Of a stretch of DNA of 64,000 nucleotides, positions 163 to 62,179 are shown in pieces. The translations under genes were made by a program, and so were the position numbers. The notes under the pieces were generated by a model. The model had not been told where the DNA came from. It saw only the letters and a program-made list of their open reading frames with translations, and did no database searches. Within the stretch, counting starts at the first letter, position 1; each line of letters starts with the position of its first letter. Location: the IMG/VR virus record IMGVR_UViG_3300035698_010479, positions 62,001 through 126,000 of that record; one strand, 5' to 3'.

Positions 163-912
163 ATGCACTCACCGTTAAAATACTGTACTAAGGGTGTACC
201 ACTACCAAATTATTTAATTGACGGACCAGAGCGTGTTTTAAACGTTTCTGAAGCTAATGTGGAAGTAGTTTACGGAGGTGATGGTTCAGTACTTCGTGGA
301 GTACAAGGTATAGTAAAGAACAATGTACCAGACGTTCTAATACTTGGTATTAATACTGGACACGTTGGCTTCTTATCAAACGATATTAGTAAAGAACAAG
401 CATTAGCTTTCCTTACCAATCCTAATGAGGCCCTTATTGAGAAGCGTAATATGTTACGTATAAGCAATAATGATACTGTATGGTATGCACTTAATGAAAT
501 AGTAATTCAACCACTAAAAAGAGGACCATTATTTGAAACGCTGCTTAAAGTTGACAATGATGATTTAGTATATAAGGGAGATGGCTTGATAATTTCTACT
601 CCTTCTGGTAGTACTGCTTATAATCTATCTGCTGGAGGACCTATTATACATCCAAGTACCAACGTGCTTGGTATTACACCTATATGCCCATTTTCTCTCG
701 CTGCACGGCCTATTGTAGTACCGAATTCTGTAAAACTTCTTGTTAATACTTCTGCCGATGCTGAAATAACTATAGATGGTGTATCAGTGTTCGTTGGAGT
801 ACTAAAGAATATGTCGATAGATCTTGCAGCATTTACTATAAATTTAGTTAAGTTTGACTCGTTTTTTGAGGCAATACATAATAAACTTGGGTGGAACTAC
901 TCTATACGGTGA
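163..912 (+). CDS. nadK: NAD kinase
   Basis: GGDG, GINTGHVGFL, NE and GDGLIISTPSGSTAYNLSAGGP motifs of the NAD kinase family. Confidence 0.93.
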   Translation: MHSPLKYCTKGVPLPNYLIDGPERVLNVSEANVEVVYGGDGSVLRGVQGIVKNNVPDVLILGINTGHVGFLSNDISKEQALAFLTNPNEALIEKRNMLRISNNDTVWYALNEIVIQPLKRGPLFETLLKVDNDDLVYKGDGLIISTPSGSTAYNLSAGGPIIHPSTNVLGITPICPFSLAARPIVVPNSVKLLVNTSADAEITIDGVSVFVGVLKNMSIDLAAFTINLVKFDSFFEAIHNKLGWNYSIR

Positions 913-917
913 CTAGT

Positions 918-1373
918 ATGATACAACTTATAAACGAAGATATTCTTGGTAACTTAGATACAAATAAACAAAAAACAATTATTCTTCATGGGTGTAATTG
1001 TTTCCACACAATGGGTTCTGGTATTGCTAAATACTTAAGAGCCAAATTTCCAAAGGTTTACACAGTAGATATTACTACTACTAAACGTGGTGATAAATCA
1101 AAGCTTGGTACTTTTAGTACAGCAATCATTGAGGATAGATTTGTAATACTTAATTGTTATACACAATTCAGATATGGTAGAGATAACATCCTGTATGCTA
1201 ACTATGCAGCTATAGAAAAATGTTTTAGACAGGTGGCTTTGCAGTATGATAATTCATGGGAAGTACGGCTTCCAAAAATAGGGTGCGGATTGGCAGGTGG
1301 TGATTGGAATATTGTAGGGCCATTGTTGATGATGCATTTAAACAATCATAGTACTAAAGTTTATTATAAGTAA
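918..1373 (+). CDS. Macrodomain (ADP-ribose processing) protein, phage Tk.4-like
   Basis: HGCNCFHTMGSGIAKYL and PKIGCGLAGGDW motifs; likely start ATG 918 rather than 891. Confidence 0.88.
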   Translation: MIQLINEDILGNLDTNKQKTIILHGCNCFHTMGSGIAKYLRAKFPKVYTVDITTTKRGDKSKLGTFSTAIIEDRFVILNCYTQFRYGRDNILYANYAAIEKCFRQVALQYDNSWEVRLPKIGCGLAGGDWNIVGPLLMMHLNNHSTKVYYK

Positions 1374-1959: not shown

Positions 1960-2748
1960 ATGCTAAAAGAAATAAAAAAGAAGTCTTTTGCTAATGGTTG
2001 TGTATATTTAATGCACACAAAGGACGGCTACCCTATAGAAGTTACTGATACATTCCTACCTTTTTATACTAAAAATGCTATAGGTGTACATCAAAATTAT
2101 CTAAAAAATGATGATTTAGGAAGTAGAAAAGAGCGTTGGATGGTAGGTGTGTCTACAATGAGTGGTTGTCCAGTCGGTTGTAAGTTCTGTGCCACTGGTA
2201 CTATGAAAAAATGCAGGAACCTTACAGCGGAAGAAATTGTCGAGCAAGTTCAGTTTATTTGGGATAAGAACTTAGGCACATGGGTAGATGGCGCTCAAGA
2301 ATTTAAGATCAATTATACCCGCATGGGTGAACCTTTTTTAAACCTGGTCGAAGTAAAAAAGGCTATCAGTGTACTTTCCGAATACAACCCTAAAATACAT
2401 CATTATGTGTCAACTATTGGTGTTAAAGGGTCAGATTTTTCATGGATTAAGGGCAACATAACACTACAATTTTCTATTCATTCGTTTAAAGAAGAATACA
2501 GAGATTGGCTTATACCTTATAAACATAAAATGTCTTTGGAAGAGATTGGAAAAGTTAGGACTGGTAGTAATCTTAAAACTACACTCAATCTTACTTTGGC
2601 CCGCCCAGAAGATTTCGATATTGGCGTTCTTAAAAAGTATTTTGATCCTGATTATTTTTTTATAAAAATTTCCCCTATTAATACTAATGAAGTATCAGAA
2701 AGTAATGGTATGGGTAGTGGTATTATAAGTCAACATAATTTAATATAA
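1960..2748 (+). CDS. RlmN/Cfr-like radical SAM protein, core part lacking the C-terminal Cys segment
   Basis: STMSGCPVGCKFCAT (CxxxCxxC), RNLTAEEIVEQV, MGEP, STIG, SIH and KISPIN align with the RlmN core; ends before the xACGQL motif. Confidence 0.88.
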   Translation: MLKEIKKKSFANGCVYLMHTKDGYPIEVTDTFLPFYTKNAIGVHQNYLKNDDLGSRKERWMVGVSTMSGCPVGCKFCATGTMKKCRNLTAEEIVEQVQFIWDKNLGTWVDGAQEFKINYTRMGEPFLNLVEVKKAISVLSEYNPKIHHYVSTIGVKGSDFSWIKGNITLQFSIHSFKEEYRDWLIPYKHKMSLEEIGKVRTGSNLKTTLNLTLARPEDFDIGVLKKYFDPDYFFIKISPINTNEVSESNGMGSGIISQHNLI

Positions 2749-2762
2749 TAGGAGTTTACAAT

Positions 2763-3050
2763 ATGGCTATAAATATCGCAGCTGAGGTAGCTTTGCTTAA
2801 GAAGTTAAAACAAAGATTTGTTAATACTGACGCGTATCTAGAGTCAATTCAGGATATGTACGAGGAAGGTCTAATAACAGCTAAAGCATTCAGAGAAATA
2901 ATAAACGAATTAGCTAAACCAAAAATAACAAAGGGTAAATCAAATAGATTGGTACCTCAAAAAGTACTTAAATCTATAATCACAAAACAAACTGGTGTAC
3001 AGGAAATAGATCCATGTTCTCATGGTAACTTCACAAGAACATCATGTTAA
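2763..3050 (+). CDS. small protein ending in a Cx9C tail (possible radical SAM substrate or partner)
   Basis: 95 aa, SD AGGAG, C-terminus DPCSHGNFTRTSC; overlaps the next radical SAM gene. Confidence 0.7.
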   Translation: MAINIAAEVALLKKLKQRFVNTDAYLESIQDMYEEGLITAKAFREIINELAKPKITKGKSNRLVPQKVLKSIITKQTGVQEIDPCSHGNFTRTSC

Positions 3051-3928
3051 ACATTTCATTTATAAATAAACTTAATTTTAGGGAAAACAGCTGTGTTTTA
3101 AACAACACTAATGCTGAAAAAATACCACATAAATATGTGAATATCTATGTAAAAATTACAAGTAAGTGTAATGCTGATTGTAGATTTTGTGTGTATTGTA
3201 CTGACTTTAATAACAAAAAAGAAGTATTCAACTTCGTAAAGTTTGAAAAAATTCTTTTATATCTTGAAGCCAATAATATACACATACATAAGATATCTTT
3301 TACCGGAGGTGAACCATCACTATATTGTAAGAGTATTGAAAAATGTATGGTAAGTGTATTAAAATTGAAATATAAACCATTCATTGTTGTAAATTCTAAC
3401 GGTTTCAAGTTGGGCTTGTTACAAAAAATAAAGGGTATAGACAATATATCTTTATCTAGACACACTATAACAGATGAAGACAACTTCAAGTTATACGACA
3501 CACGCTCAGTTGCTTCATCAAATGACATAAGTAACGCTCAGCCAAATAAAATACACTTGACATGTAACCTTATTAAAGGATTTATAGACTCAGAGGAACG
3601 TATCATTGACTATCTTGAAAAAGCAGCATCTCTAAATGTATATGATGTAGGATTTGTAAGCTTGATGAAGGTAAATACATTCTGTAAAACAAATCATGTG
3701 GATTTTAACGATATAATTTTTAAAAGAAAAGATATAGTGTGTAATAAAGAATGGTCTAATTCCGATGTATGCAGATGTAAAAACTTTCTATACTTACCCA
3801 GTAAGGGTAATAAAGTTGTAAAATTTTATTCACGTTATAGATGTAAGAATGATGTTGACTCTAAAAGTAATTATGTATTTGATGGTAGTCATTTTAGAAG
3901 TAATTTTGGTGGTACAATAATCTATTAG
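3044..3928 (+). CDS. radical SAM protein of unknown function
   Basis: KITSKCNADCRFC (CxxxCxxC), SFTGGEP, VNSNG; extra C-terminal Cys (CRC). Confidence 0.88.
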   Translation: MLNISFINKLNFRENSCVLNNTNAEKIPHKYVNIYVKITSKCNADCRFCVYCTDFNNKKEVFNFVKFEKILLYLEANNIHIHKISFTGGEPSLYCKSIEKCMVSVLKLKYKPFIVVNSNGFKLGLLQKIKGIDNISLSRHTITDEDNFKLYDTRSVASSNDISNAQPNKIHLTCNLIKGFIDSEERIIDYLEKAASLNVYDVGFVSLMKVNTFCKTNHVDFNDIIFKRKDIVCNKEWSNSDVCRCKNFLYLPSKGNKVVKFYSRYRCKNDVDSKSNYVFDGSHFRSNFGGTIIY

Positions 3929-3937
3929 GAGAATATT

Positions 3938-4132
3938 ATGTCAGAAGAAGTTAAAAAACAAACCAGTAATGGTAAATTAGTAACAAAAGAAGAGTATATC
4001 AAGGAAGTAAAAGAAGAACTGATAAAACTTCAACTACAAGAAGCTGGATATGATTATGCTGTAGCTATAGCCACTGATGCTGAGATAAAAGCAGGTGCTG
4101 CTTGTGGTCAATTAGCTATCATAAACGAGTAG
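3938..4132 (+). CDS. stand-alone C-terminal segment of an RlmN-like enzyme (AACGQL peptide)
   Basis: LQEAGYDYAVAIATDAEIKAGAACGQLA matches the RlmN C-terminal helix/strand/Cys loop (E. coli ...[12 protein letters not shown]); has its own SD (AGGAG) and ATG. Confidence 0.8.
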   Translation: MSEEVKKQTSNGKLVTKEEYIKEVKEELIKLQLQEAGYDYAVAIATDAEIKAGAACGQLAIINE

Positions 4133-4136
4133 TAAT

Positions 4137-4460
4137 ATGAAAAAGGTGTATATATCATCAAAATATAGTGAAGGAGATAAAGAGGCAAACGTTCAAGCAC
4201 AGATAGATATAGGTAACATATTAATTGATAATGGTTTCAATCCGTTCGTACCGTTGCTATCACACTATCTGAATGCAGTTAAACCTAGATCTTACAATTA
4301 CTGGCTCGGTGCCCTCATAGAGTGGCTTAAAATATGTGATTGTTTACTACGTCTAGAAGGAAAAAGTCCAGGGGCAGATATGGAGGAGATACTCGCTAAA
4401 CGTCTAGGTATACCAATATTCTATTCAATGGAAGATTTACTTAAATATTATAAAAAATAG
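4137..4460 (+). CDS. DUF1937/DUF4406-like (nucleoside 2-deoxyribosyltransferase-like fold) protein
   Basis: KVYISSKYS, FNPFVP, CDCLLRLEGKSPGADME...GIPIFY pattern. Confidence 0.7.
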   Translation: MKKVYISSKYSEGDKEANVQAQIDIGNILIDNGFNPFVPLLSHYLNAVKPRSYNYWLGALIEWLKICDCLLRLEGKSPGADMEEILAKRLGIPIFYSMEDLLKYYKK

Positions 4461-4480
4461 GTATAAAGCAAGGAGGGACC

Positions 4481-5107
4481 ATGTTTAAATACCCAAAAAC
4501 GTATCACTTGACATGGTCGCCAGGAGTAACACATGACGATAAAATTATAAGTTCCTTAGATAACTTCATAGGTAAGCGTGTAATAGTGACCGAGAAATTA
4601 GATGGTGAATGTACTACTATCACAAAAGGAAATATACATGCCAGATCTATGGATTCAAAAGACCACGTGTCCAGACATTGGGTTAAAAGTCAATACGGAT
4701 ATTTGACTTACGCATTGAGAGAGCCTATTAAAATATGTGGTGAGAACGTGTTTGCTAAACATTCAATTGCATATGATAATCTAATTGGCTTCTTTTACGC
4801 TTTCTCTTTATGGGATGGTACTAAGTGCTTATCGTGGGATGACACGCTTGCAGAACTTGCTTTTCTTAATATACCACATGTACCAGTAATATATGATGGG
4901 CTGTGGGATGAATCGTATATAAGACATATTCCTCTTTTAAATACTGAGAAAGGTATTATGGAAGGGTATGTTGTTAGGTTGGCGGATGAATTTGAACTTA
5001 TTGAATTTAGTAACAGTGTGGCAAAATATGTAAGACCTAACCACGTGCAGACAGACGAACACTGGTTATACCAACCTATTATTAAAAATAAATTAATAGG
5101 AGATTAG
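4481..5107 (+). CDS. RNA ligase family nucleotidyltransferase
   Basis: KYPKTYHLTWSPG, motif I TEKLDGE, ICGEN, EGYVVR, VAKYVR. Confidence 0.85.
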   Translation: MFKYPKTYHLTWSPGVTHDDKIISSLDNFIGKRVIVTEKLDGECTTITKGNIHARSMDSKDHVSRHWVKSQYGYLTYALREPIKICGENVFAKHSIAYDNLIGFFYAFSLWDGTKCLSWDDTLAELAFLNIPHVPVIYDGLWDESYIRHIPLLNTEKGIMEGYVVRLADEFELIEFSNSVAKYVRPNHVQTDEHWLYQPIIKNKLIGD

Positions 5108-5331
5108 TGAAAAATACTGGGTACGTATATGAAGATTTTCATGACGTTGTTATAGAGGTACTTCTTTCTAGAAATACTATAAACAAAGAATATTTAACAG
5201 ACGATTTTGTCAGAGAAGTATATAATAAACTACCAAAAGATATAAAAGCTACTGCTATAACATGGGGTTGTTCTGACACAGTGTTTAGAGATAATGCTTT
5301 CACCTGGTTAAAAGAAAATTGGAGAAATTAA
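5107..5331 (+). CDS. hypothetical protein
   Basis: 74-aa ORF, GTG start coupled to the upstream stop, SD AGGAG. Confidence 0.65.
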   Translation: MKNTGYVYEDFHDVVIEVLLSRNTINKEYLTDDFVREVYNKLPKDIKATAITWGCSDTVFRDNAFTWLKENWRN

Positions 5332-6474
5332 ATGGAAAGACAGTTAGCATCTATACAAAAAATAGTAGATATACAACCAATAGTTGGTGCTGATAAAATT
5401 GAAGTTGTGTTTATTCTAGGCTGGCAGTGTGTTGCAAAGAAGAACGAGTTTAAAATTGGTGATCTCTGTGTATATTTTGAAATAGACTCCCAGTTACCAA
5501 AGCATATTATATTTGATTTTATGGCACATAGAAAATTCAGAGTCAAAACAATCAAGCTTAGAAAACAAATATCACAAGGATTAGCATTACCACTGTCGAT
5601 TCTATCTAATTTTACAAATAAAAATATAAATTCTTTCCGTGAAGGGGATGATGTATCAGAATTAATAGGTGTTACTAAATATGACCCTAGGCCACAGGAT
5701 GCTGACCCAGTTAGTACTAAAAAGCATAATCCTATTGTTAATTATTTAATGGATTACTTCTGGTTTAGGAAAGTATATAACCTTGTTATGCCTAAAAAAA
5801 CTAAAGGCAACTTTCCAGAATTCATTAAAAAAACTGATGAGACTCGTTTACAAAGTTATCCATTAGTGCTCGTAAAAAATATAGGAAGAAAGTTCTATCT
5901 TACCGAGAAATTGGATGGTAGTTCTGCGTCTTATTTTTTTAATAAAGCACTTGTTGGTAAAAGGTTTGGATTGTTTCCTATCGACAAGGGTAATGGCTTT
6001 GGCGTATGTTCTAGAAATATAAGACTTGTCACACAAGATAAAAGATATTGGTGGAAGTACGCTCTAGATAATAATATGGAAGAAAAAACTAGAACCATTT
6101 CTAAATGTTTAGACTGTAGTATCGCTATACAGGGTGAACTCGTTGGTCCTGGTATTCAGAAAAATAAATATTGTTTAACCGAACTGGACTTTTATTGTTT
6201 TAATTTATTCAATATAGACACAAATACATATTTATCTAAAGAGGATAAAGAAATTATCTGTGATCAGTTTAATATAAAACTTGTTCCTTGTGATGATACT
6301 ATCATCGAATTATCTACTGAGCATGATGTTGCATTTTTTGTTAACCTTTCAAAAAGGAAAAGTAAGCTAAATAAAAAGACCACTGCTGAAGGTATAGTAG
6401 CAAGGAGATTAACAGACGAAACGATAAGCTTTAAAGTAATAAATCCAGAATGGTTACTAAAAAATGATGAATAA
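5332..6474 (+). CDS. RNA ligase, DRB0094-like family
   Basis: N-terminal RQLASIQKIVDIQPIVGADKIEV domain, TEKLDGSS, IQGELVGPGIQKN, EGIV, SFKVIN. Confidence 0.9.
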   Translation: MERQLASIQKIVDIQPIVGADKIEVVFILGWQCVAKKNEFKIGDLCVYFEIDSQLPKHIIFDFMAHRKFRVKTIKLRKQISQGLALPLSILSNFTNKNINSFREGDDVSELIGVTKYDPRPQDADPVSTKKHNPIVNYLMDYFWFRKVYNLVMPKKTKGNFPEFIKKTDETRLQSYPLVLVKNIGRKFYLTEKLDGSSASYFFNKALVGKRFGLFPIDKGNGFGVCSRNIRLVTQDKRYWWKYALDNNMEEKTRTISKCLDCSIAIQGELVGPGIQKNKYCLTELDFYCFNLFNIDTNTYLSKEDKEIICDQFNIKLVPCDDTIIELSTEHDVAFFVNLSKRKSKLNKKTTAEGIVARRLTDETISFKVINPEWLLKNDE

Positions 6475-8223: not shown

Positions 8224-8967
8224 CTAAATAGTTATAATCTCTGCGCAATCTTTGTGTATTATTACTTGGTGTTCCACATGACAACTTATTTTACCAGAAT
8301 TTGTTACAACTGTCCAGCCATCATTTAATCTATGATTATCAGAAGGACCGTCTACAAGCATTGGTTCTATACAAATACACATACCTGCTTTTAATTTGAT
8401 ACCTTCTATATCCCTACCAAAGTTAAATATTGGTGGGTCCATATGTAAATCTCTTCCTATACCATGCCCAATGTAGTTTTTAACAACAGAGAAGCCGTAT
8501 TCTAATGCGTAGGCTTCAATTACTCTTCCAATAGTACCTACAGTAACTCCTTCTTTTATTTCCAATATAGCCCCATTTAAAGCCATTCTAGACACATCCA
8601 GTAATTCTTGTTTTTCAACACTAATAGTACCAACACCTGTAGAAAAAGCAGCGTCACCGTAGAAACCATTTTTATAGACACCAACATCAATACTTAGTAA
8701 ATCCCCTTCCACTAGTTCCTTACTTGTTGGGAAACCGTGTACTATGACTTCATTAGTACTGCAACAAGTACAAAAAGGAAAGCCTCTATACCCCTTGAAT
8801 GCGGGTAGTCCTCCTTCAGATAGTATTATTTTTTCAGCTATGCTATCTAATTCTAAAGTAGATATCCCAGGAACTACTAATTCAGCTAGTTCTCTATGGA
8901 CTAAAGCTACTATTCTACCACTTTCTCTCAACTTGTCTAAGTCACTACTAGTATGTGTAACAACCAA
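8224..8967 (-). CDS. map: methionine aminopeptidase type I
   Basis: STNEVIVHGFP, SIDVGVYKNGFYGDAA, GHGIG, IEPM, HVEHQV; likely TTG start at 8967 after AAGGAG (247 aa), not 9105. Confidence 0.95.
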   Translation of the reverse strand: MVVTHTSSDLDKLRESGRIVALVHRELAELVVPGISTLELDSIAEKIILSEGGLPAFKGYRGFPFCTCCSTNEVIVHGFPTSKELVEGDLLSIDVGVYKNGFYGDAAFSTGVGTISVEKQELLDVSRMALNGAILEIKEGVTVGTIGRVIEAYALEYGFSVVKNYIGHGIGRDLHMDPPIFNFGRDIEGIKLKAGMCICIEPMLVDGPSDNHRLNDGWTVVTNSGKISCHVEHQVIIHKDCAEIITI

Positions 8968-9082
8968 AGTACTCTCCTTATGTCTGTGTTTGCGCCCCCA
9001 AGTACTACTCACAATGTAGATAGTACTACTGATAGTGTATGGTTTGTTTGTTGTTTGTTGGGGTTTATCCCATCTATATTTT

Positions 9083-9149
9083 AAAAAATTTTGTGAAGTG
9101 AGCAAGCCCTTGAACCGAAACTTATTTCATACCTACAAGATTTTTACAA
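9083..9149. repeat. degenerate ~67-bp intergenic repeat, copy 1
   Basis: AAAAAATTTTGTGAAGTGAGCAAGCCCTTGAACCG...TTTCATACCTACAAGATTTTTACAA aligns with 9364-9430. Confidence 0.6.
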
Positions 9150-42862: not shown

Positions 42863-43096
42863 TTAATCTCCTATATAAGAAAATTCACAACAAGGAAATT
42901 TTCTTCCTTGTTCATCTAAAGGTTCTTTCCAATTATCTAAATCTAGATTATCAGGATTACCGTCGGTTGGCTCCATATTACAACTACATCCTCTTGGTAC
43001 ACATATATCGCAATAGAAATCATTTATCTGCTCACCAGAGTAACTTGGTAAATATAACCATACAGCTACTTTACCACAATCACATTTACCTGTCAT
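42863..43096 (-). CDS. Cys-rich small protein
   Basis: CDCG, CDIC, GCSC, PCC. Confidence 0.7.
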   Translation of the reverse strand: MTGKCDCGKVAVWLYLPSYSGEQINDFYCDICVPRGCSCNMEPTDGNPDNLDLDNWKEPLDEQGRKFPCCEFSYIGD

Positions 43097-44046
43097 TATT
43101 TATTTAATACCCTAGATAAAATAAATTGACCACAAGCTGACATAATTTCCTCTCCTGGTGAAAATTGTACTTTTATGTTTTTGTGCTTATCATATAAAAG
43201 TTCCACCAACTTAGCAAAATTCTTAGCTTCTTCAAAACTTGTACCTTCGCATTTATTAAATCTAAGTAAACGTAACTCAATATTATTAAATACTGTTAGT
43301 AAACTTAATAAGTAATTTATATCATTTATGGAGTCGTTAACACCATCAAAAAACATATGATGTAGTATAACATCAATACCATCTTGTTCTAAATACTTAA
43401 GGTAGTCTATGGCAGTAAATGTATCAACAGAACTAGGAATCAATGTGTTCCTTATAGAATCTTCTGCACTGTGCAGGGAGTAAAATACCCTAAATGGTTG
43501 TCTTTTACTCCCCTTTGTATACTTTCTAGCTGGGTTTAAATGTGTTGTCCATACACACTCAGAAAGTAACTTAATATAATCTATATCAGTATTTGGAATT
43601 TTAGGTAATGTCGTAGCAATGTCTACCCCATCTATACCAGCAGACATATCAAAACTCTGTATACACTGTATAATATCTTCCGTAACTTCATACACAAGTT
43701 CAAGGTCTAAAAAGCCATCTCCCATACCCATCCAAGATAATTTAGTGTACATGCTTCGTAATTCAGGCCTAATCTTTAACTCAGCATCAAGTGCATCTAG
43801 CACGTTTCTAGTAATAGCCATAGCAGACAGTTTATGGTAATGGCATTTTTTAACTGTTAGATAACAGAACTTGCAACCTATAGGACAACCTACGGATGTA
43901 CTTATAAAAATATTATATTTATTACCTACACTTCCGTAACCTCCACAGCCAACTTCTCCTGGTGGTATGGTCTTTATAGCCGTTTCAGAACCATCATCGT
44001 GTACATATTTTGATACGTGTCCATTTTTAGCTCTATACACCTCCAT
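43096..44046 (-). CDS. RlmN/Cfr-like radical SAM protein (full length)
   Basis: ISTSVGCPIGCKFC, WMGMGD, YSLHS, GVND, FNK, GEEIMSACGQF. Confidence 0.88.
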   Translation of the reverse strand: MEVYRAKNGHVSKYVHDDGSETAIKTIPPGEVGCGGYGSVGNKYNIFISTSVGCPIGCKFCYLTVKKCHYHKLSAMAITRNVLDALDAELKIRPELRSMYTKLSWMGMGDGFLDLELVYEVTEDIIQCIQSFDMSAGIDGVDIATTLPKIPNTDIDYIKLLSECVWTTHLNPARKYTKGSKRQPFRVFYSLHSAEDSIRNTLIPSSVDTFTAIDYLKYLEQDGIDVILHHMFFDGVNDSINDINYLLSLLTVFNNIELRLLRFNKCEGTSFEEAKNFAKLVELLYDKHKNIKVQFSPGEEIMSACGQFILSRVLNK

Positions 44047-61662: not shown

Positions 61663-62179
61663 TTGTTTCTCCCATATAAAGATAGCCATAATCCTTAGGA
61701 TATCTATATTTATATTTTTCCAACACCTCATCCGCGTAATATAATAACTGTGACTGTGCATCTATTATATCATTATCCTTTTTAAATGTCAAGTTATCTA
61801 TATCTAATAAATAACATACAAAATAAAAAAGATCCTCTTTTGTACGGGCAGCGAAATATGATTTAACTTTAGTGTTAGTGACTATAAATGGATCTATTTC
61901 TAAAATTTTCATACAGGTATACTTTGCTACACCTGCAAATTCACTTAATATTTTTAATGTACTAATATTAGCTCCTGAAAAAGTATCTTCTTGAACAATA
62001 AATTCTGGTTTGAATTTAAGTAGTACTATCTCTAAATCTCTACTAAATAACAGTAGTCTAGCGGATCTTTGTAGTTTAGGACTTGTAACAATAACCCCCT
62101 TAATAAAAGTTTTGCCATCACTTGTAAAACACCAACCAGTACAAGACGCTGACACGTCTAGACTTAATATGCTACACAT
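61646..62179 (-). CDS. ruvC: RuvC-like Holliday junction resolvase
   Basis: LSLDVS..TGW, VQED, DIIDA. Confidence 0.75.

Follow-up and report, generated by a model that had tools for sequence, protein, structure and literature searches.

A 228-kb salt-lake phage encodes a small protein ending in cysteine next to an uncharacterised radical SAM enzyme, and this pair recurs in many large phages and in Bacteroidales mobile elements. These data suggest that the two genes are probably a new protein-modifying system, in which the small protein would be the cognate substrate of the enzyme. We found no description of this family in the literature.

Results

We examined a 64,000-nucleotide window (positions 62,001 to 126,000 of IMG/VR record IMGVR_UViG_3300035698_010479; all features described here are on the + strand). 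A sequence-only reading had pointed to a 95-amino acid ORF with a C-terminal Cx9C that overlaps the start of a 294-amino acid radical SAM gene with extra C-terminal cysteines, both nested inside a split gene. This observation is confirmed. The ORF at 2763-3050 encodes 95 amino acids ending DPCSHGNFTRTSC (residues 83-95; 3009-3047), that is C85-x9-C95 followed by the stop, and is preceded by a Shine-Dalgarno-like AGGAG at 2750-2754, 8 nt upstream of its ATG. Its TGT-TAA end overlaps the ATG of the 294-amino acid ORF at 3044-3928 by 7 nt (ATGTTAA), which suggests translational coupling.

To determine whether the cysteine ending could arise by chance, we counted such endings across ORFs. Only 1 of 178 window ORFs of 50 amino acids or more ends in Cys. 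About 3.5% of ORFs of 40 amino acids or more in the related loci do so, yet the partner next to the enzyme ends in Cys in most viral loci. Even a crude count of the longest upstream ORF gives 26 of 78 (binomial P about 1e-18).

We next searched for relatives of the pair. A single-protein scan of viral contigs found no close relative, and only an alignment-based scan succeeded. In 23 of 29 distinct related viral loci (loci carry L numbers below), a small ORF ending in Cys lies beside the homologous enzyme, usually immediately upstream with an overlap or a gap of at most 18 nt; the pair also occurs in Firmicutes-type MAG contigs. The remaining six viral loci show no Cys-ended partner within the flank. 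In L014 the partner has the leader-like domain and a DGCSH motif but no terminal Cys, and a search for a frameshift hiding one found none. L013 has two tandem copies of the small gene.

The small protein has an N-terminal helical leader-like domain (about residues 1-50), a variable linker and a C-terminal tail. In a 19-row family alignment only Met1 and the terminal Cys (C95) are invariant; the terminal Cys is also invariant in 8 further database members. The tail is the most conserved segment of the protein, and the N-terminal hydrophobic pattern is conserved as well. The tails of the 23 viral loci and of P0119-P0127 define the motif D-x-C-[GS]-x(2-5)-[YF]-x(2-5)-C-stop, which the window tail fits. 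However, the first Cys of the tail is missing in L013, L015, L019 and L026, and the aromatic residue is missing in the L009/L010 subgroup, so no single crosslink pair is universal. Searches of NCBIfam, PHROGs and PADLOC, including the Nif11/NHLP leader models, returned no hit for the small protein, and Atlas look-alikes scored 0.75, which is noise level. The tails contain no anSME (CxPxR) or PQQ-like motif; the glycyl radical motif RVxG[FWY] is likewise absent, and the Gly before the aromatic residue is not conserved.

The 294-amino acid protein, here called rSAM-B, belongs to the radical SAM superfamily: its CNADCRFC motif (C42/C46/C49; nt 3167-3190) and GGE motif (residues 88-90) are invariant across 22 sequences, and PF04055 is recorded on its homologues. 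Among its further cysteines only C17, C174 and the C243-x-C245 pair (nt 3770-3778) are invariant across the 22 homologues. An AF2 model (pLDDT 88.7) matched radical SAM structures, with MoaA the best full-length match (Foldseek TM 0.65; VIA Z 18.7 over 259 residues; 17-18% identity), followed by the Twitch/SPASM peptide maturases SuiB, ChlB, SkfB, CteB and anSME (Z 15-16). The homologues fall into 113 database clusters of about 290 amino acids, none of them named.

All curated families score far below their cut-offs. The best profile matches are MoaA (TIGR02666; E 1.5e-11, 43.8 bits against a cut-off of 284) and prokaryotic viperin (NF038283; E 8.5e-11, 41.5 bits against 180, covering residues 37-150 only); PADLOC pVip gives a partial match (E 1.4e-10, 39 bits), and across these searches the viperin match is confined to residues 34-150. 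Weak partial pVip hits were the only indication of defence-system membership. The maturase models, including CcpM, PqqE, ScmE/F, YhhB and HxsC, score 18-31 bits against cut-offs of 268-500. The enzyme lacks a SPASM motif (CX9-15GX4C...CX2CX5CX3C), although a single non-canonical auxiliary site remains possible. It also lacks an RRE: only about 30 residues precede the core, and no PqqD/RRE hit was obtained. The protein ends in IIY and has neither the MoaA auxiliary motif CX2CX13C nor the C-terminal GG, and no Moco genes are nearby.

To test whether the two proteins might bind, we predicted their complex alongside controls. The pair scored 0.71 (runs 0.65, 0.75 and 0.71), while the controls scored 0.00-0.02; this mark was reached by 58 of 80 solved complexes and by 2 of 110 mismatched pairs, although our prediction used our own alignments and riding ligands and so differs from the calibration. 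The runs share at least 61% of their contacts, and the partner pLDDT is at least 68. In the predicted complex, partner residues 1-42 dock on enzyme residues 226-260 in the C-terminal sheet, while partner residues 81-86 contact enzyme residues 13, 16-17, 19-20, 33, 82-83 and 113, placing the tail at the barrel mouth. These predictions support binding.

The flanking split gene is also real. The ORF at 1960-2748 encodes the N-terminal piece (262 amino acids) of an RlmN/Cfr-like class A radical SAM methylase, with the motif CPVGCKFC. It scores 71.8 bits against TIGR00048 (cut-off 290) over profile positions 101-244, and its PDB matches are Cfr and RlmN. The N-terminal RNA-binding extension is absent, and a Gly occupies the place of the resolving Cys (RlmN C118, Cfr C105). 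The ORF at 3938-4132 encodes the C-terminal piece (64 amino acids) with the AACGQ loop, invariant in 8 peptides and equivalent to the loop with the methyl-carrying Cys355 of RlmN. A phmmer search of this 64-amino acid ORF against the PDB did not retrieve RlmN, and hhalign placed it on the C-terminus of the window's own 316-amino acid RlmN-like protein only weakly (E 0.018, probability 2.6%); the homology rests on the motif, on a MAFFT alignment of the concatenated pieces with Bacteroides RlmN, and on gene order. A core piece of 260-281 amino acids occurs in L004, L005, L007, L009, L010, L029, L084, L085 and Kehishuvirus, and the four-gene order recurs in relatives. In Kehishuvirus the C-terminal piece lies directly after the core ORF.

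RlmN-like pieces lie within the fetched flanks in 13 of 29 viral loci, spread over the basal branches of the phage clade. By contrast, bacterial relatives carry a HemN-like radical SAM gene, adjacent to the rSAM-B homologue in nearly all 67 bacterial loci (Bacteroidales and Firmicutes) and lying between the tail gene and the enzyme in L098, L101, L106 and L109. These HemN-like proteins are nearest the STM4012 family but score 135-172 bits, under its cut-off of 380, and no such gene is present in the window. A search for rSAM-B as the STM4011-type partner of these proteins gave no hit. The megaphage subclade has the pair without any second radical SAM gene nearby, and Kehishuvirus has the split RlmN-like pair alone; the two modules can therefore work apart.

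In Bacteroidales the partner is a large multidomain protein of 350-770 amino acids with varied N-terminal domains. Comparing its C-terminal domain with the small tail family by hhalign gave a probability of 0.4%, so the two are not shown to be related, and only 12 of 28 of these large proteins end in Cys. No protease or exporter is conserved beside the pair in the viral loci, and the cassette and its relatives sit among NAD-salvage and RNA-repair genes typical of host-takeover regions. No RNA run contained the region, and four salt-lake DNA runs yielded only short identical contigs at depth 2-4, with no variants or joints.

Discussion

The sequence-only reading proposed a leader-plus-core precursor next to its maturase, with thioether or cyclisation chemistry, or alternatively a second Cys-carrier peptide. 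Our analysis supports this interpretation in part. Tail conservation and synteny, both set beforehand as conditions that could refute the idea, were examined, and the idea survived, and the controlled complex prediction supports binding; a cognate precursor with a radical SAM maturase therefore stands. The specific chemistry is not supported by any test here, and the absence of a SPASM motif, an RRE and a conserved protease or exporter, together with the large Bacteroidales partners, fits protein modification, or a partner subunit, better than a classical secreted RiPP. That reading also missed that the split RlmN-like gene is a conserved companion rather than an accidental host.

We favor, with moderate confidence, a model in which the 95-amino acid protein is the cognate, precursor-like substrate of rSAM-B. 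In this view, its N-terminal helical domain would act like a leader, docking on the C-terminal beta-sheet domain of the enzyme and feeding the flexible Gly/Ser-rich tail into the mouth of the SAM barrel, where 5'-deoxyadenosyl-radical chemistry would modify it. The enzyme probably uses an auxiliary Fe-S cluster held by some of C17, C174, C243 and C245, and the terminal Cys is probably the reacting group or a cluster-anchoring ligand. The most likely chemistry would be a Cys-based crosslink (an S-C thioether to the conserved aromatic residue, the Asp or the terminal residue) or an oxidative reaction that needs the free C-terminal carboxylate. A second radical SAM enzyme would belong to the same pathway: the split RlmN/Cfr-like methylase that brackets the pair in this phage clade, and a HemN-like enzyme in bacterial relatives. 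Class A and class C methylases both add a methylene radical to sp2 carbons (PMC12871812), although methylase activity of the HemN-like proteins is not shown, and a methylation or methylene-transfer step on the tail is inferred. Our data establish the gene structure, the family-wide synteny, the conservation of the tail, the fold (from the AF2 model) and in silico support for binding; that the small protein is a substrate and is modified, that an auxiliary cluster exists, where and how the chemistry takes place, and what the second enzyme does are inferences made without biochemical or expression evidence.

Among alternatives, it is possible, though less likely, that the small protein is a detachable catalytic or co-substrate subunit, a Cys-carrier. 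Its terminal Cys would ligate the open site of an auxiliary cluster, or carry a methyl, sulfur or radical equivalent into the active site, as the flexible mCys355 loop does in RlmN and the C-terminal tail does in MoaA, and the true substrate would be a nucleotide, an RNA, a host protein or the like. The RlmN-like enzyme of this cassette has its Cys loop on a separate ORF, so trans-acting Cys tails are used here. The fold of rSAM-B is nearest MoaA, a nucleotide enzyme with a functional C-terminal tail; the only invariant feature of the partner besides Met1 is one Cys at the very end; and the Bacteroidales partners are large proteins. Against this view, an N-terminal domain followed by a long variable linker and a short conserved tail is the anatomy of a precursor, a stoichiometric subunit would not need a low-complexity linker of 20-80 variable residues, and tandem copies such as those in L013 are typical of precursors. 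A more doubtful possibility is that the small protein is a pearlin-like scaffold, as in 3-thiaglutamate biosynthesis on TglA-Cys, whose C-terminal Cys, with or without neighbouring residues, would be transformed by the two radical SAM enzymes and released as a small molecule or cofactor acting on host metabolism or defence. A reacting residue that must be the last one is characteristic of scaffold-borne C-terminal chemistry (MftA, TglA-Cys), and the host-takeover setting would suit such a product, but no peptidase or amide-bond-cleaving enzyme is conserved next to the pair, and no PEARL-like ligase is present, since the Cys is genetically encoded.

It is unlikely that rSAM-B is a viperin- or MoaA-like nucleotide-modifying enzyme with a functionally unrelated, or only regulatory, small neighbour: although MoaA and viperin give the best profile matches and MoaA the best structural match, the scores are far below the cut-offs, the viperin match is partial, the MoaA C-terminal motifs are absent, and the conserved, translationally coupled partner and the predicted complex would be left unexplained. 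Chance adjacency of a spurious or unrelated ORF has nothing in its favour beyond the general frequency of small ORFs in AT-rich phage DNA. It is effectively refuted by the family-wide conservation, a homologous ORF family being kept across proteins of 15-58% identity in dozens of loci; the ribosome-binding site, the start-stop overlap, the highly significant enrichment of Cys endings and the near-zero control scores also speak against it.

The closest systems are the Twitch/SPASM peptide and protein maturases with adjacent substrates (SkfB, CteB, PapB, SuiB, ChlB, QhpD/QhpC, anSME). As in these, a radical SAM core carries a C-terminal beta-rich extension and extra conserved Cys, the substrate gene (here putative) is adjacent and co-oriented, and a leader-like part is predicted to bind the enzyme while a C-terminal Cys-containing segment reaches the active site; QhpD and anSME show that whole proteins, not only short peptides, can be substrates. 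However, rSAM-B is about 100-150 amino acids shorter, its leader-like partner domain is predicted to dock on the C-terminal sheet rather than on an RRE, and the key residue of its putative substrate is the very last one. MoaA (GTP 3',8-cyclase) is of similar size with one auxiliary-cluster-type C-terminal domain, but for rSAM-B a protein partner is conserved instead. By analogy, in the mycofactocin pair MftC/MftA and in LanD-type enzymes the modified residue must be the last one of a small precursor encoded next to the enzyme. MftC is an RRE-SPASM enzyme acting on a C-terminal Val-Tyr, LanD enzymes are flavoproteins, and no sequence relationship to either was found here.

A more speculative and rather unlikely reading is that the four genes at 1960-4132 form one pathway for a new kind of phage protein modification. 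rSAM-B would first transform the Cys/aromatic tail, after which the split RlmN-like enzyme, lacking the resolving cysteine and carrying its methyl-bearing Cys on a free 64-amino acid peptide, would either C-methylate an sp2 carbon in the tail or leave the peptide covalently joined through a methylene bridge to the tail protein, or to a host RNA or protein: a deliberately unresolved RlmN intermediate used as a crosslinking device. The Bacteroidales mobile-element cassettes (large CGEGKGP protein, rSAM-B and HemN-like gene) would be the cellular counterpart, possibly a conflict system.

Radical SAM maturases acting on ribosomal peptides or proteins are known, but this family has no curated model, no name and no solved relative closer than MoaA, and its substrate signature, a Cys that must be the last residue behind a leader-like domain, is unusual. 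Its distribution covers jumbo and megaphages of salt lakes and guts, and integrative elements of Bacteroides and Prevotella. Its regular coupling to a second radical SAM enzyme, of class A type (split RlmN-like) or HemN type (the family of class C methylases), points to a two-step radical pathway that has been exchanged between phages and cells. If confirmed, the pair, whose minimal two-gene form is directly testable in E. coli, would add an RRE-independent, SPASM-less maturase type, and would be a clear case of phages encoding their own radical protein-modification system.

A small Cys-ended protein is encoded upstream of an uncharacterized radical SAM enzyme

The 228-kb virus record that includes the window is 86% complete by CheckV, and its DNA occurs in salt-lake metagenomes. 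ORF 2763-3050 (+) encodes 95 amino acids ending DPCSHGNFTRTSC, such that Cys85 and Cys95 are separated by nine residues and Cys95 is the last residue of the protein. An AGGAG lies 8 nt before its ATG, and its last codons overlap the start of ORF 3044-3928 in the sequence ATGTTAA. ORF 3044-3928 encodes a 294-aa protein with the radical SAM motif CNADCRFC and further cysteines (referred to here as rSAM-B). Only one of 178 ORFs of 50 aa or more in the whole window ends in Cys. The observation of the sequence-only reading, that a Cys-tailed small protein and a second radical SAM enzyme are nested inside a split gene, is confirmed as written.

To place the enzyme among known families, we compared it with curated profiles and found that none scores above its cut-off: the best hits are MoaA (43.8 bits, cut-off 284), prokaryotic viperin (41.5, cut-off 180) and HxsC (28.7, cut-off 268), followed by a list of peptide maturases at 18-26 bits. 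PHROGs returned only generic radical SAM families, and PADLOC a weak partial pVip match. A word-based search found 113 clusters of about 290 aa, all of them metagenomic and none carrying a specific name. A tblastn search revealed full-length relatives at 30-33% identity in uncultured phage genomes of 635-735 kb, and an alignment-based scan revealed 26 full-length relatives in IMG/VR contigs of 9-483 kb. In a 22-sequence alignment, the following positions are invariant: C42, C46 and C49; G88, G89 and E90; N117, S138, H140, G203, N211 and Y262; and four further cysteines, C17, C174, C243 and C245.

The AF2 model of the enzyme is confident (pLDDT 88.7, pTM 0.87). Its best full-length structural match is MoaA (Foldseek TM 0.65; VIA Z 18.7 over 259 residues, rmsd 3.7), followed by GDGT-MAS, BlsE, SuiB, viperin, ChlB, SkfB, CteB and anSME. 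The enzyme therefore belongs to the broad MoaA/Twitch/SPASM neighbourhood of radical SAM enzymes, although it has no SPASM motif and no RRE domain. In the ESM Atlas its own cluster is 93% viral.

The small proteins form a family with a conserved Cys end

We next examined the genes beside every homologous enzyme in the viral loci (related loci are designated L followed by a number). In 23 of 29 distinct loci, a small ORF of 81-181 aa ending in Cys lies beside the enzyme. It is usually immediately upstream, with an overlap or a gap of at most 18 nt; in L017 it is downstream on the other strand, in L023 it is separated from the enzyme by an inserted ORF of 233 aa (2244-2945), and in L013 it is present as two tandem, diverged copies (2371-2616 and 2588-2836, ending NGRC and STTC) upstream of a single rSAM-B gene. 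In a 19-row alignment, the only invariant columns are Met1 and the terminal Cys, and eight further database members also end in Cys.

The tail consensus is D-x-C-G-x-G-G-Y-S-R-S-S-C, with the aromatic residue 3-8 residues before the end; the first Cys is absent in L013, L015, L019 and L026, and the aromatic residue is absent in the L009/L010 group. The N-terminal 50 residues show a conserved helical hydrophobic pattern, whereas the linker is low-complexity and variable. Whether the tail is more conserved than the rest of the protein had been proposed beforehand as a check, and the outcome is favourable: it is. There are, however, exceptions. L001/L012, L025, L028 and L029 show no such ORF within the fetched flank, and in L014 the partner is a 353-aa protein that contains the leader-like domain and ends in a DGCSH...Y tail without a terminal Cys; no frameshift explains this. 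No known family matched the small protein in the searches made.

The small protein is predicted to bind the enzyme

To determine whether the two proteins might interact, we folded the enzyme and the 95-aa protein together in the presence of two 4Fe-4S clusters and SAM. The complex scored 0.71 (runs of 0.65, 0.75 and 0.71), as compared to 0.02 for the best of three controls. In the calibration of the method, this mark was reached by 58 of 80 solved complexes and by 2 of 110 mismatched pairs, although our use of our own alignments and of accompanying ligands differs from that calibration. The runs share at least 61% of their contacts, and the partner pLDDT is at least 68.

Two contact regions are predicted: partner residues 1-42 lie on enzyme residues 226-260, the C-terminal sheet that holds C243 and C245, and partner residues 81-86 (EIDPCS) touch enzyme residues 13, 16-17, 19-20, 33, 82-83 and 113, which are the invariant C17 region and the strand ends at the barrel mouth. 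The last nine residues are not placed with confidence. This is the geometry expected for a leader-guided substrate; it supports binding but does not prove it.

The pair lies between the two pieces of a split RlmN/Cfr-like gene

ORF 1960-2748 (262 aa) matches RlmN/Cfr only over the core (TIGR00048 positions 101-244; Cfr and RlmN structures), and ORF 3938-4132 (64 aa) belongs to a peptide family with invariant AACGQ. The C-terminus of E. coli RlmN and the window's own unsplit RlmN-like protein (43096-44046, minus strand) both end with the same ACGQ loop, which contains the methyl-carrying Cys355. When we joined the two window pieces and aligned them with Bacteroides RlmN, the 64-aa piece aligned on the RlmN C-terminus; direct phmmer and hhalign support is weak because the piece is short. 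In the cultured crAss-like phage Kehishuvirus tikkala (OQ198717; locus L086), a phage of Bacteroides cellulosilyticus, the two pieces are adjacent separate ORFs (2928-3716 and 3719-3850), both annotated as hypothetical proteins, and the Cys-tail/rSAM-B pair is absent. The gene is therefore naturally in two pieces, and in the window the Cys-tail/rSAM-B pair sits between them.

At the position where RlmN C118 or Cfr C105 resolves the Cys-CH2-substrate adduct, the split window protein has Gly, and its methyl-carrying Cys, as assigned by this alignment, is on a free 64-aa peptide. The unsplit protein (316 aa; TIGR00048 72 bits against a cut-off of 290), which ends in an SACGQF loop, also lacks the resolving Cys: a Phe sits at the RlmN C118 position.

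A second radical SAM gene recurs beside rSAM-B in phages and bacteria

The nesting is conserved and not accidental. The AACGQ peptide lies downstream of rSAM-B in the window and in L004, L005, L007, L009, L010, L013, L026, L028, L029, L084 and L085, and upstream of it in L014; the RlmN-like core lies upstream in most of these loci. In L085, a 223-aa Cys/His-rich ORF (3031-3702) that, judged by eye alone, looks like an HNH homing endonuclease lies between the RlmN-like core and the tail gene. On a maximum-likelihood tree of 77 rSAM-B proteins (FastTree, midpoint-rooted, branch supports not inspected), the loci with the AACGQ peptide occupy the basal branches of the phage clade, while the megaphage subclade (L001-L003, L006, L008, L011, L015-L024 and L027) has the pair alone.

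A scan of 185,579 species genomes revealed 67 loci at 28-37% identity with the same invariant Cys, most of them in Bacteroidales and some in Firmicutes MAG contigs. In these genomes, rSAM-B is almost always adjacent to a HemN-like radical SAM protein of 416-461 aa, for which the nearest family is STM4012, at 135-172 bits against a cut-off of 380. In Firmicutes-type contigs, a small Cys-ended tail protein, the HemN-like gene and rSAM-B form one tightly packed same-strand gene cluster with overlapping coding regions. In Bacteroidales, by contrast, the upstream partner is a 350-770 aa protein with a phage non-structural (A1S_2505/phrog_2072) or tubulin-like N-terminus and a conserved C-terminal domain with HPEV, PVY and SCGEGKGP motifs; 12 of 28 of these end in Cys, and no similarity to the small family is detectable. 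One of the loci is a Bacteroides chromosome, where the cassette lies by PcfJ, PcfK and Toprim genes of a conjugative element. In L100 (2166-6156) and L161 (6208-10171) (Bacteroides chromosome / conjugative element), the cassette comprises three genes, encoding a tubulin-like protein with an HPEV...SCGEGKGP C-terminal domain, an rSAM-B homolog and a HemN-like radical SAM protein; it lies next to PcfJ, PcfK and Toprim genes, and the rSAM-B protein is listed in 1222 index blocks of gut metagenomes. This may be a conflict system of mobile elements.

Class C (HemN-family) and class A (RlmN) methylases both add a methylene radical to sp2 carbons (PMC12871812). Because a second radical SAM enzyme of one or the other family recurs beside rSAM-B, we infer that a methyl or methylene transfer step belongs to the pathway, although this is inference only.

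The genes around the cassette suggest a host-takeover region but say nothing direct about function. In the window (163-1373 and 4137-6474) and in relatives (L084, L085, L002 and L003), the cassette lies among NAD-metabolism genes (NAD kinase, a macro/DarG-like domain, NAMPT, NUDIX, NadR and PnuC) and RNA-repair genes (a DRB0094-type RNA ligase, RtcB and a CCA-adding enzyme), and a nucleoside 2-deoxyribosyltransferase-like gene is also present. The neighbours in the window are NAD kinase, a macro domain, the deoxyribosyltransferase-like protein and RNA ligases, and those in relatives are NAMPT, NUDIX, NadR, PnuC, RtcB and a CCA-adding enzyme. Further along, the window encodes a type I methionyl aminopeptidase (8224-9105, minus strand; TIGR00500, 266 bits, above its cut-off of 171).

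A putative substrate-maturase pair

The best-supported reading, which we hold with moderate confidence, is a cognate substrate-maturase pair: the leader-like domain would dock on the C-terminal domain of the enzyme, the tail would enter the active site, and the enzyme would then perform radical chemistry that involves the terminal Cys. The gene arrangement, the conserved Cys end and the recurrent second radical SAM gene are established by the sequence comparisons, whereas binding is supported only in silico, and the role of the small protein as a substrate, the modification itself and the contribution of the second enzyme are inferred in the absence of RNA or biochemical data. PapB shows that radical SAM thioether ligases can use a C-terminal carboxylate-bearing residue as the acceptor (PMC12373016), which makes a C-terminal macrocycle plausible but does not show it. 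The interpretation put forward in the sequence-only reading, of a leader-plus-core precursor beside a maturase with thioether or cyclization chemistry, is supported in part, as a pair but not in its specific chemistry.

Other explanations carry less weight. The small protein could instead be a trans-acting Cys-carrier or cluster-ligand subunit, which remains possible though unlikely, while a role as a scaffold for small-molecule synthesis is more doubtful. It is less likely still that the enzyme acts on nucleotides and has an unrelated neighbor, and chance adjacency is very improbable.

A radical SAM maturase with an adjacent precursor is already a known arrangement; the family described here is uncharacterized. 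It lacks the defining SPASM and RRE features of the known maturases and, in this view, requires a terminal Cys. It spans phages and Bacteroidales mobile elements, and it comes with a second radical SAM enzyme that, in this phage, is itself encoded by a split gene lacking its resolving Cys.
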